DNA from: Cyanophora paradoxa CCMP329
Lineage: Eukaryota; Plantae; Glaucophyta
DNA length: 64,000 nt
Direction: 5' to 3'
Assembly (NCBI GenBank): GCA_004431415.1
Contig: QPMI01000220.1
Span: forward strand, 1-64,000
The stretch's first letter is position 1. Every line of letters starts with the position of its first letter. The position numbers and the translations under genes are program-made. Below the pieces are notes generated by a model, which was given only the letters and a program-made list of their open reading frames with translations, did no database searches and was not told where the DNA came from. Below are positions 48,532 through 63,407 of this stretch, in pieces.

Positions 48532-51500
48532 ATGGTGAACGCGGCGCACACCAAGTACCCATTCCTCGTGGAGCTGGGCCTCCAGGAGGGTGCGCTCCCC
48601 GTGACCGCGTCCCGATATATCGCTCCTCGGCCCGCGATCTCCCATACGAGCACTTCGAACGCTCCCGAAGTCCTCTATCCGAGCCCTGATGCCAACGTAC
48701 GCCGCGCGCCCTCCCTGCAGAGAACCCTGGCACGTTCTACGGCAAGTGGAGCGGGAACGGCGACAAGCTAGAAGTCCGCACCCCGATCGATGGCAGCGTC
48801 ATCGGTGTCGTTCGTTGTAGTACGGCGGAGGAGTACGAGGCGTGCGTGAAGGCCATGGACGAGGCCAAGCCGATGTGGTCCGCACACAGGCGACGATCGC
48901 AGACGCGAGCTGACTCGCCGTTTCGGGCAGGAACGCCACGCCGGCTCCCAAGCGCGGAGAGGTCGTCAGGCAAATCGGAGAGCGCGTCCGCGAGCTCGTG
49001 AAGCCCCTCGGCCAGGTCCGCCCTCTCGGAAGCCGCATGCGCCGCTTGCGAGGCTGACGAGATGCCCGGCGCGCACAGCTCGTAGCGCTTGAAATGGGCA
49101 AGATCCTTGCAGAGGGTGCGTTTCGAGTCGTCCCGGGGGCCGCCCGACGCGCTCCCGCGCAGGAGTTGATCGCTCCCCGGCGCGCAGGCATCGGCGAGGT
49201 CCAGGAGATCATCGACATGTGCGACTACGCGTGTGGTCTATCGCGTATGATCGGCGGGCAAGTAATTCCGTCCGAGCGTCCCGGTGCGCAGCGCTCGCTT
49301 CGCCCGCCGCGCCGGCGCGTGCCTGACCCGCCCCAGGCCACATGATGATCGAGCAGTGGAACCCCCTCTCGGGCCACACCGGCATCATCTCCGGTGCGCC
49401 TATGCTCGAGCCTGCGTTCATCTCGCCTCGCTGACCGCGCGCTCCCCCCAGCATTCAACTTCCCGGTCGCCGTCTTCGGGTGCGCCCCAGCGTCCCGGGC
49501 CCGCCGCTGGCGCTTCCGCGCCCCGCACAGCGCGACCGCCCGCAACGCAGCTGGAACATGTGCCTCAACATGATCGCCGGAAACTGCGAGGCGCGTCGGA
49601 TCCCTCGGGTCGGGTCGGATCGCGCGGATCGAATTCGAATTTGATCCGGGCGGGGCAGGTGTGGAAGGGCTCGGAGACGACGCCGCTCTCGGCCATCGCC
49701 CTCCAGCGCATCGTGGAGGAGGTCCTAAAGAAGAACGGCGCGCCCCGCCCTCGCCCATCCACCTCTTCGATCCAGCTCTGACCCTCCGCGCGCCCCGCAG
49801 GCTACCCCGCCGGCATCAGCACGCTCGTCACCGGCGGCCGCGCCGTGCGCTGCCCCGGCATCCGCTCCCTCTTTCGAATCTGCTCTGCTCCGCTCTGCTC
49901 CTCGCGTGCGACCCGAGGCGACCCGGGGCGGGGCGGGGCGGCAGGTCGGGGAGCGGATGGTGCAGGACGGGCGGATCCAGCTGGTCTCCTTCACGGGCTC
50001 CATCCCCGTCGGCCGCGCCGTCGGCGAGATCGTCCAGAAGCGCTTCGGCAAGGCACGCGCCCGCCGCCCGCCCGCCCGCCCGCGATCCCCCTCCTTCCTC
50101 ACGTGCCCCCAGGTCCTCCTCGAGCTCGGCGGCAACAACGCCGTCATCGTCATGGACGTGCGCGACCCCACTCCAGCCCTTCCCGCCCAGCTCACCCCGC
50201 CCGGCCCCGCCCGCCCCGCCCCCGCCCTTAGGACGCGACGCTGGACCTGGCCGTGCGCGCCGTCGTCTTCGGCGCCGTCGGCACCGCCGGCCAGCGGTCC
50301 CCGCCCCGCCCCTCCCCGGGCCCCGGGTCCCGGGGGGACCCTCACCTCCGCGACCGCAGGTGCACGACGATCCGGCGGCTGCTGCTGCACGAGAAGGTCC
50401 ACGACGCCTTCCTCCAGAAGGCGCGCCCCCCCCTCCCTCCCCTTCCGGGTCCCCGCCGCTGGTTCTTAGCCTGCGTCCTCCCGCCCTCCCGCCCTCGCCG
50501 TACGCAGCTCGCGGCGGCGTACAAGTCGATCAAGATCGGGGACCCCCTGGAGGCCGTGCGCCGCCCCCCGCCCCAACCCGTCCCCCCCGACCCTCTGAGC
50601 GAGGCGGGGCAGGGCGTGCTGTGCGGCCCGCTGCACACCGCGCGCGCCGTCGAGGCCTTCAAGGGCGCCGTCGCCGCTGCCAAGGCCCAGGTCCGGCCGT
50701 CCGGAGGGCCGCCCGCCCTCGGCCGGCCCGCCCGCTCGCTGAGCGCCGAGGGGCGACGGCGACGGCAGGGCGGGAAGGTGGTCCTGGGGGGAGAGGTCCT
50801 CGACCGCCCCGGCAACTACGTCCAGCCGACCGTGCGCCGCACACGTACCCCCCAGAGGGCTCGAGCGAGACGGGCGGGGGTACGCCCGGCCCGCAGATCA
50901 TCACGATCGCGCACGACGCGCCCATCGTACAGACGGAGACCTTCGCCCCGATCCTCTACGTCATCACGGTACCCCCCGCGCTCCACTGGGGGTACCGGCA
51001 CGACCTCTGAGGAGGCGGGGGGGGTACCAGGTGAGCTCGCTGGAGCAGGCGATCAAGTACAACAACGAGGTCCCCCAGGGCCTCTCCAGGTGCCCACCTG
51101 TACCCCCGAGCCTCCTCGCGCCTGTACCCCCGCGCTCACGCGCCGCGCAACGCGCAGCGCGCTCTTCACCGAGAACATGAAGAACGTATTCCAGTGGATC
51201 GGTGCGTGCGGCCCCGGCCCGATCGCGAGTTGCGAGGTGGGATCGCTGCGGGTTCGAGCCCGGGGCCGCGGCGGCGCGCGCAGGCCCGCACGGGTCGGAG
51301 TGCGGCATCGTGAACGTGAACATCGGGACGAGCGGCGCCGAGATCGGCGGCGCCTTTGGCGGCGAGAAGGCGCGCCGGCGCCCCTCTGCAGCGGGGCGGG
51401 CGGGCCTGACGGCCTCTGCCTTCGCAGGAGACGGGCGGGGGCCGGGAGGCCGGCTCGGACAGCTGGAAGCAGTACATGCGCCGCTCCACCGTGCGCCCCG

Positions 51501-51670
51501 CCCCGGCGCCAGCCGAATTAATTAAAACCTTTTGGCTTGAGCCTCCAAGCCAAGCTTTATGGGCGTTGGCGTGTCCGAGCGGGCGCGAAGCTGACGGGCC
51601 GGCGGGCGCGCAGTGCACGGTGAACTACACGGACAAGCTCCCGCTCGCCCAGGGCATCAACTTCGGCTGA
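48532..51670 (+). CDS. ALDH7: Aldehyde dehydrogenase family 7 (antiquitin / alpha-aminoadipic semialdehyde dehydrogenase), 23 exons
   Basis: [122 protein letters not shown]. Confidence 0.96.
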
Positions 51671-61700: not shown

Positions 61701-63407
61701 CCGCGGGGCACCTCGCCCGCGTCCAGTGCGCCGAGGTGCGCCGCGGGGAGGAGGGCCCGCCCCGCCGCCGCGCCCTCCGAGGCCGACGAGGCCGCCGGCG
61801 CCTGCAGGTGTGGTGCCCGATGACCGCCGAGTTCTTCTCCGAGTACCTCGCCACCAAGTCCAAGTGCCCCCGCCCCGCCCGCGCCGCCTTGGCATCTAGC
61901 TTGGGGCGCCCCCCTCACGCCGGGCAGCGCGCGGCGGATGCTGCTGTACGCGATGAACCCGAACAAGTTCCGCGCCTGCCAGTTCCTCATCAAGTACCAC
62001 GAGCGCCGCGGCGATAAGGTCCGCCCGATCGAACGATCCATCTAGCCTAGCCTATTTAGGTGGCGCCCGGCCCGGCGTGAGCCCCCGGCAGATCATCGTC
62101 TTCTCGGACAACATCTTCGCGCTGAAGGCGTACGCGAAGACGCTGGGGAAGCCCTTCATCTGCGGGCCCACCTCCCAGGTCGGGCCCGCCCCGCCGCGCA
62201 GATTTGATCCGGCGCTGGTTCGACCCTCGGACTCGGCTCGGGCGCGCAGGTGGAGCGGATGCGCATCCTGTACCAGTTCCAGCACAACGCCGCCCTCTCC
62301 ACCATCTTCATCTCCAAGGCCCGCCCGCCCCACTCCCCCCCTCCTTCCGGCCTCGTCTTATCTTCTTCGTGCAGGTGGGAGACACGTCGATCGACCTGCC
62401 CGAGGCGAACGTCATCATCCAGATCTCCTCCCACTTCGGCTCCCGCCGCCAGGAAGCCCAGCGCCTGGGTACGACGTTGTTCCTGGCTGCCTCGGCTCAC
62501 CGGCGGATGATTCCTTAACGCGCCTTCCCTCTCAGGGCGCATCCTGCGGCCCAAGTCCCGCATGGAGGGGGAGTACAACGCGTTCTTCTACACGCTCGTG
62601 TCCCAGGTTCGGCTCCCGGCCGCGCCTCTTCCACGCCCCGCTCACGCCCTCCGGGGGTACAGGACACGTCGGAGATGTTCTACTCGACGAAGCGGCAGCA
62701 GTTCCTGATCGACCAGGGGTACGCTTTCAAGGTGCGCGGCGGGTACAGGTCCTCCCAATCCCGCGACTGGCGATCTTGATGCGGGGCGGGCGGGGCAGGT
62801 GGTGACGAGCCTGGGGGACATGGGGGCCGAGGAGCTCTGCTTCGCGACGAAGGAGTCCCAGCGCGACCTCCTCGCCACGTGCGCCAGTTTTCTCCCTGCC
62901 TCGCCTCGCCCCCGGCCGGGCCGGCCTGAGCCGGGCCGGGCCGGGCCGGGGGGGCAGGGTGCTGGCGGCGGACGAGTCGGAGGCGGGGGAGGAGCGGCTC
63001 CGCGAGGACGACGACGGCAACCCCGTCGCCGGCAGGGGCGGGCGCGGCGGGCGCGGCGGGCGCGGAGGGCGCGGCGCCTCCCTCGCCGCCAAGCGCTCCA
63101 CCGGCGGTGCGCGGCGCGGCGCGGCGCCCGGCGCCCGGCGCCCTCGCGCCCGCCCCGCCCCGCCCTGGCCCGGGAGACTTAGAGCGCTCGCTCGCGCGCT
63201 GGCGCAGACATGAAGGCGTTCTCGGGGGCGGACAACATTCTGTACGCGGAGTTCAACTCGAGCCCGGGGGCGGCGGCGCCCTCGATCTTCGAGCGGCGCA
63301 ACGTGCGGCACCCGCTCTTCAAGAAGCGCATCGCGGAGATGAAGAAGGCCGCCAAGGACGCCCGCGCCGGCGCCGGCGACGGCGGCGCCGGCGGCTCGGG
63401 CTACTAG
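58705..63407 (+). CDS. XPB: TFIIH helicase/translocase subunit XPB (ERCC3/Ssl2), ~32 exons
   Basis: [140 protein letters not shown]. Confidence 0.97.

Follow-up and report, generated by a model that had tools for sequence, protein, structure and literature searches.

Introns that begin with GC instead of GT make up ~1% of the introns of most eukaryotes (PMC3033335; PMC10639083). A 64,000-nucleotide stretch of the glaucophyte Cyanophora paradoxa CCMP329 (contig QPMI01000220.1, positions 1 to 64,000; hereafter the window) raises the question of whether two of its genes use such GC-AG introns far more often and, if so, how these introns are recognised. The genes lie on the plus strand and encode ALDH7, an alpha-aminoadipic semialdehyde dehydrogenase (48532..51670), and the XPB/ERCC3 helicase (58705..63407). 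A preliminary description of the region 48532-63407 had put the share of GC-AG introns at ~28% and had suggested a variant U1/U6 small nuclear RNA (snRNA) or relaxed recognition of intron position +2. Here, we provide evidence from spliced protein alignments that 13 of 46 supported introns in these genes (28%; 22 introns from ALDH7 and 24 from XPB) begin with GC, and that GC and GT donors belong to one and the same consensus. The best explanation, to which we assign a probability of roughly three in four, is that they are ordinary U2-type introns with the general donor AG|GYSCGC, about one quarter of which carry C at +2, with GC pressure as the likeliest cause.

The window is nuclear DNA from contig tig00000949, gene names of which occur in the supplementary tables of the 2019 genome paper of C. 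paradoxa, and has a G+C content of ~70%. According to that paper, C. paradoxa has a genome of 67.6% GC with 9.2 introns per gene, which are 86 bp long on average; the gene models were made with BRAKER1 from RNA-seq and, as the paper itself states, need curation. The public ALDH7 model of the window, P0001 (eukprot tig00000949_g5725.t1, 509 amino acids), is 100% identical to the encoded protein and could be threaded through the DNA from base 48532 onwards, with GT, GC, AT, GA or GG permitted as donor. Because P0001 is itself a predicted model, the foreign ALDH7 of Mortierella (P0005) served as an independent reference in a custom protein-to-genome spliced aligner that handles codon matches, gaps and introns in three phases. 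Six foreign XPB proteins, from a streptophyte alga, a liverwort, a trebouxiophyte, Chlorokybus, grapevine and a sea anemone, were the references for the helicase gene. Cyanophora's own XPB model was not found, neither by a word search with the open frame nor by a search with a Dunaliella fragment, which returned foreign XPBs only; the word search was swamped by the proline-rich translation of an intron. Donor choice was controlled with models restricted to GT and with models in which all 16 donor dinucleotides were available at equal cost. Donors were further scored with a flank matrix of positions -3 to -1 and +3 to +8 that was built from GT introns only, the GT donors being scored leave-one-out.

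Exact threading of P0001 yielded one most economical solution with 23 exons and 22 introns, 17 with GT and five with GC donors, exactly the five of 22 counted for ALDH7 in the preliminary description. The spliced alignment of the Mortierella protein reproduced the 21 introns that can be aligned, all five GC donors among them, with gap-free junctions. Restriction to GT lowered the alignment score from 1426 to 1227; two introns then stayed in the protein as 20 and 29 extra residues, and 18 conserved residues were missing. With 16 dinucleotides allowed, the conserved part kept only the same GT and GC sites.

All five ALDH7 GC-AG introns are supported by both the threading and P0005. The intron at 49591..49658 (68 nucleotides, phase 0) follows an exon ending in GAG; its length is not a multiple of three and its removal is thus required, and the sole in-frame GT within 45 nucleotides scores -2.4. 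The next one, at 49738..49800 (63 nucleotides, phase 1), has no in-frame GT within 45 nucleotides and contains a CTGAC branch-like motif 19 nucleotides from its 3' end. The two introns that the GT-only model retains are those at 50053..50112 (60 nucleotides, phase 0, donor GCACGC), kept as the 20-residue insertion that is missing from homologues, and at 50421..50507 (87 nucleotides, phase 0, exon end AAG), kept as the 29-residue insertion. The 18 conserved residues are lost near the C-terminus, in the region of the fifth intron at 51370..51427 (58 nucleotides, phase 0), which has no in-frame GT nearby.

The XPB gene contains about 30-31 introns. The six homologues agree on 24 of them in the conserved core between 59268 and 62957, 16 with GT and eight with GC donors; an intron at 59931, the acceptor of which is ambiguous, comes in addition to these 24. 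A GT-only model lowered the score against the reference P0137 from 1951 to 1558 and broke conserved blocks. With any dinucleotide allowed, each junction on which at least five of the six references agree was GT or GC.

Four XPB GC-AG introns were selected with all six references, and again when any dinucleotide was allowed. The intron at 59391..59439 (49 nucleotides, exon end CTG), which the preliminary description had offered as its example, is one of these; in the GT-only model its donor is forced to 59364 and nine residues are lost. The others are located at 61344..61413 (70 nucleotides), with the atypical donor GCGAGC, the lowest flank score of the GC set (-0.7) and no in-frame GT nearby, at 61620..61669 (50 nucleotides, phase 0), the length of which is not a multiple of three, and at 62319..62374 (56 nucleotides, phase 0), where the GT alternative at 62355 scores -10.8. 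The intron at 61248..61313 (66 nucleotides) follows an exon end AAC, i.e., one without exonic AG, and was found with six of six references and with five of six when any dinucleotide was allowed. At 59268..59336 (69 nucleotides, phase 0, flank score 6.2) four of six references support an intron with a CTAAC branch-like motif, and at 60387..60453 (67 nucleotides, phase 0) five of six support a probable GC donor. For the eighth, at 61055..61148 (94 nucleotides), the acceptor is fixed and the donor is placed at 61055 or, with some references, at 61067; both placements are GC if only GT and GC are permitted, and no in-frame GT lies nearby.

The unconserved N-terminus, the linker (59931-60386) and the tail of XPB are beyond the resolution of homology. 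The linker and the C-terminal tail (62958-63182) of Cyanophora XPB carry lineage-specific low-complexity stretches rich in glycine, arginine and acidic residues. A small splice and coding model trained on ALDH7 and XPB, which reproduced 22 of 22 introns of its own training gene ALDH7, adds five predicted introns to the unconserved parts of XPB, of which two begin with GC. The one in the linker, at 60146..60205, has strong predicted signals (donor 9.3 bits, acceptor 6.7 bits), whereas the one in the N-terminal part, at 59088..59196, is weak and uncertain (donor 0.7 bits). Eight homology-supported and two predicted GC donors in about 30-31 introns agree with the preliminary count of about ten among ~31.

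Exact removal of the 13 GC-AG introns restores the conserved reading frame in the threading and in the spliced alignments. In eight of the 13 the length is not a multiple of three, and the conserved exons downstream can be read only once the intron has been removed. For six of the 13 there is no in-frame GT within 45 nucleotides, and the alternatives available to the others score between -10.8 and -0.4. Restoring the conserved proteins thus requires GC donors.

GT and GC donors alike follow the consensus AG|G-Y-S-C-G-C. Among the 46 introns, A occupies position -2 in 25 and G position -1 in 36; within the intron, +1 is always G (46), +2 is T in 33 and C in 13, +3 is G in 30 and C in 12, +4 is C in 44, +5 is G in 39, and +6 is C in 36 and T in four. 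The hexamers GTGCGC, GTCCGC, GCGCGC and GCCCGC, listed beforehand as typical, account for 28 of the 46 donors, and the description of +5 G as mostly kept, with G or C at +3 and C at +4 and +6, is borne out by these counts. The acceptor consensus is GCAG, with G at -4 in 37 and C at -3 in 45 of 46 introns before the AG, and there is no uridine-rich tract; the 3' signal of the ALDH7 and XPB introns is as unusual as their donor. The introns are 49-131 nucleotides long (median 66.5) and have 77% G+C. In 27 of 46 introns, a YTNAY motif (CTGAC, CTNAY or another) is located 10-37 nucleotides from the 3' end; ten have only an SGAC-type motif, four only a generic A-pyrimidine pentamer, and five none of these. 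About one fifth of the introns thus have only a CCGAC or GCGAC type motif at the expected place of the branch site.

Within this common consensus the GC donors are compensated. Their mean flank score is 6.0 bits, as compared to 3.2 bits for GT donors and -4.0 bits for non-donor GC dinucleotides of the same genes. Exonic AG precedes ten of 13 GC donors versus 11 of 33 GT donors (p 0.01), and +5 G is present in all 13. Twelve of 13 GC introns are in phase 0, mostly after AAG or GAG codons, versus 15 of 33 GT introns (p 0.006). Outside +2, GC donors thus match the consensus more closely than GT donors, which argues for a continued preference for U at this position. Such compensation is the classical pattern of U2-type GC-AG introns that are spliced by the major spliceosome, and is how GC-AG introns ordinarily behave with a canonical U1. 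The interpretation given in the preliminary description is retained in part: tolerance of C at +2 and intron definition of very short introns (49-131 nucleotides) agree with the data, whereas the data give no pointer to a changed recognition of +2, as GC donors need a better match elsewhere. In the remaining window (1-48000, both strands), motif-defined candidate introns in excess of dinucleotide shuffles comprise 25-38% GC, a crude estimate with matrices trained on the two genes.

How might so many GC donors have arisen? Strong pressure towards G and C (67.6% GC in the genome, 77% in the introns) may act on very short introns that would be recognised as a whole, and a change from T to C at +2 would be tolerated where the donor otherwise pairs well with U1, i.e., where the exonic AG, +1 G and +5 G are in place. 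Tolerance restricted to well-paired donors would explain why GC donors mostly follow AAG or GAG codons in phase 0. Mutation pressure as the cause and a canonical U1 5' end in Cyanophora are the two steps of this proposal that we infer. Several observations weigh against it. Pairing with a canonical U1 or U6 does not account for the near-invariant +4 C, which implies that something else reads +4; whereas a canonical U1 would be expected to prefer G to C at this position, 44 of 46 donors carry C, and there the account is incomplete. The evidence for the junctions is the conservation of the proteins together with a public gene model, and the sample comprises only two genes and 46 introns. Two GC junctions, at 60387 and 61055, are less firmly established than the others. 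The former has an in-frame GT six nucleotides upstream, but this scores -10.0 versus 6.0 for the GC donor; at the latter, four references shift the donor by 3-6 nucleotides to CG or CC starts when any dinucleotide is allowed.

It is tempting to propose that the splicing RNAs of Cyanophora have co-evolved with the donor, such that the pairing region of U1 (or U6) has changed to match GYGCGC. The +4 C (44 of 46) and +6 C (36 of 46) mismatch canonical U1 and the U6 ACAGAGA box, yet are clearly selected, and the U1 5' end of Entamoeba did co-evolve with an atypical donor (bioRxiv 10.1101/2022.06.08.495308). However, a standard U1 5' end is found in five Mamiellales, Thecamonas, Micromonas and Aureococcus, which have the same donor code, +4 C, or abundant GC-AG introns; the canonical U1 in these closest published cases lowers the odds of a variant snRNA in Cyanophora. 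Moreover, the additional pairing that GC donors need in the exon and at +5 is what one would expect of a U1 with a preference for U at +2. We thus regard co-evolved splicing RNAs, the idea of the preliminary description, as unlikely. Put more generally, the 5' splice site could have a changed reader, either U1 positions 3-6 pairing with SCGC at +3 to +6 or another component reading +4 C, and this we consider equally doubtful; in a milder form, Cyanophora, Mamiellales and Thecamonas may share a non-U1 reader of +4 C. If a changed reader were true, Cyanophora would be the first intron-rich, free-living alga known with co-evolved donor recognition. No snRNA genes were detected in the window by an Rfam scan that ran to position 63000, at the gathering threshold and with E up to 1.

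Splicing could also be assisted by structure, as the two consensus intron ends are mutually complementary (GCGC at +3 to +6 with GCGC at -6 to -3), or the introns could be of introner type, like the Micromonas IE-A1 introners, 53% of which have GC donors (PMC3879977). Yet pairing of +k with -k positions is no commoner than with swapped acceptors, the best terminal stem averages 4.9 versus 4.9 for permuted ends, and the mean folding z-score against dinucleotide shuffles (-0.19) is not significant. Likewise, all-against-all comparison of the 46 introns revealed similarity only in GC-rich low-complexity stretches of at most 32 nucleotides. Both variants are accordingly improbable. Still less probable is an artefact, i.e., GC junctions mis-modelled in place of nearby GT donors or intron retention, or base errors in the assembly. 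Such concern is raised by the public ALDH7 model, which is a predictor's output. The sequencing runs X1-X7, likely RNA, contain ~0.38 of the words, as would spliced RNA, a word share that does not show junctions. On the other hand, GT-only models delete or insert conserved residues, retention would shift the frame in eight of the 13 cases, the scores of GT alternatives are far lower than those of real donors, and the exact gene model and seven foreign proteins yield the same junctions. Three particular intron classes, two of them those just discussed, were rejected. Hairpin or end-pairing introns of the euglenid nonconventional type would not fit, with no excess of pairing over permuted ends and no covariation; an introner family of the Micromonas IE-A type would not fit 46 introns that are not copies of one another; and no donor (0 of 46) resembles that of U12-type introns (RTATCCTT donor, TCCTTAAC branch site), as +3 to +6 read SCGC.

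Between ALDH7 and XPB lies a gene on the minus strand with EF-hand open frames (53166-53914; best Pfam E 2.7e-6 at 53810-53914), which is probably the neighbour that the preliminary description had assigned to another family. A SWIM gene, also named there as a carrier of GC donors, was found neither when all six frames were scanned for C-x-C...C-x-H nor when 20 open frames between ALDH7 and XPB were compared with Pfam. Owing to the high GC content across 48532-63407, stop-free frames of 200-480 codons extend through introns and along the antisense strand of either gene, and open frames are therefore no guide to genes here. Translated introns are rich in proline, arginine and alanine and swamp word-based protein searches. 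Base composition varies along the window, with 81-84% G+C in 1-2000 and 54001-56000 as compared to the mean of ~70%. Upstream of XPB, 56400-57700 has a lower GC content (~0.64) and no recognisable coding frames, and is probably intergenic or promoter sequence.

In the papers searched, a set without the 2012 genome paper, and in the supplements of the 2019 genome paper, we found no report of GC-AG frequency or donor consensus for Cyanophora or glaucophytes. Reading the introns as U2-type with tolerated C at +2, they appear to be an undescribed further example of a pattern known from GC-rich algae, and not a new kind of splicing. Gene predictors that penalise GC donors would mis-join or retain about one quarter of the introns of Cyanophora. 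An AG|GYGCGY-like code is now seen in a glaucophyte as well as in green picoalgae, and GC donors are abundant in GC-rich stramenopiles and haptophytes, too; this recurrence suggests that splice signals respond to GC pressure in a repeatable way. Its thousands of introns of this kind would make Cyanophora a good place to find what reads +4 C.

Ordinary GC-AG introns of animals and plants are likewise U2-type, end in AG and have a stronger match at the other donor positions, but at ~1% they are about 20-30 times rarer than in Cyanophora and have AG|GCAAGT in place of AG|G-C-S-C-G-C. Entamoeba also has a near-universal donor consensus that mismatches classic U1; a changed U1 5' end was found there, whereas the closer analogues of Cyanophora have a standard U1. 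Iwata and Gotoh described GC-AG introns as "extraordinarily abundant" in some GC-rich species, with shares of 39.6% in Aureococcus, 22.2% in Micromonas pusilla and 7.7% in a Chlorella, and with a canonical U1 5' end in Aureococcus and Micromonas (PMC3033335); 14-17% GC donors were reported for pelagophytes (bioRxiv 10.1101/2024.10.30.620910). Like Cyanophora, Aureococcus anophagefferens and Pelagomonas calceolata have a high GC content, to which their 14-40% GC-AG introns were attributed (PMC3033335; bioRxiv 10.1101/2024.10.30.620910). Yet these are intron-poor stramenopiles with less than one intron per gene, and the comparison of donors covers +2 only. The 65% GC genome of Emiliania huxleyi shares canonical AG acceptors and GC donors explained by GC content (PMC4028052). 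There, however, GC is the majority donor (~60%, checked by reverse transcription PCR; PMC4028052) and heavy intron retention was reported, while GC donors are a minority in Cyanophora (~28%).

The Mamiellophyceae (Micromonas, Ostreococcus, Bathycoccus) resemble Cyanophora in a GC-rich algal genome, in G-Y-G-C-G-Y after an exonic AG and, for part of the introns, in a candidate branch motif of the CTGAC type. Micromonas donors read AG|GTGCGT or AG|GYGCGT, with the branch motif CTGAC (PMC3879977), and Roy and Bowser found GYGCGY donors in five Mamiellales and +4 C in Thecamonas, each with a standard U1 (bioRxiv 10.1101/2022.06.08.495308). In contrast to Mamiellophyceae, Cyanophora prefers C over T at +6 (36 versus 4), and C is also frequent at its +3 position (12 of 46). 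Its introns are much shorter and much more closely spaced, its GC donors have no tie to introners, and it is a glaucophyte and not a green alga.

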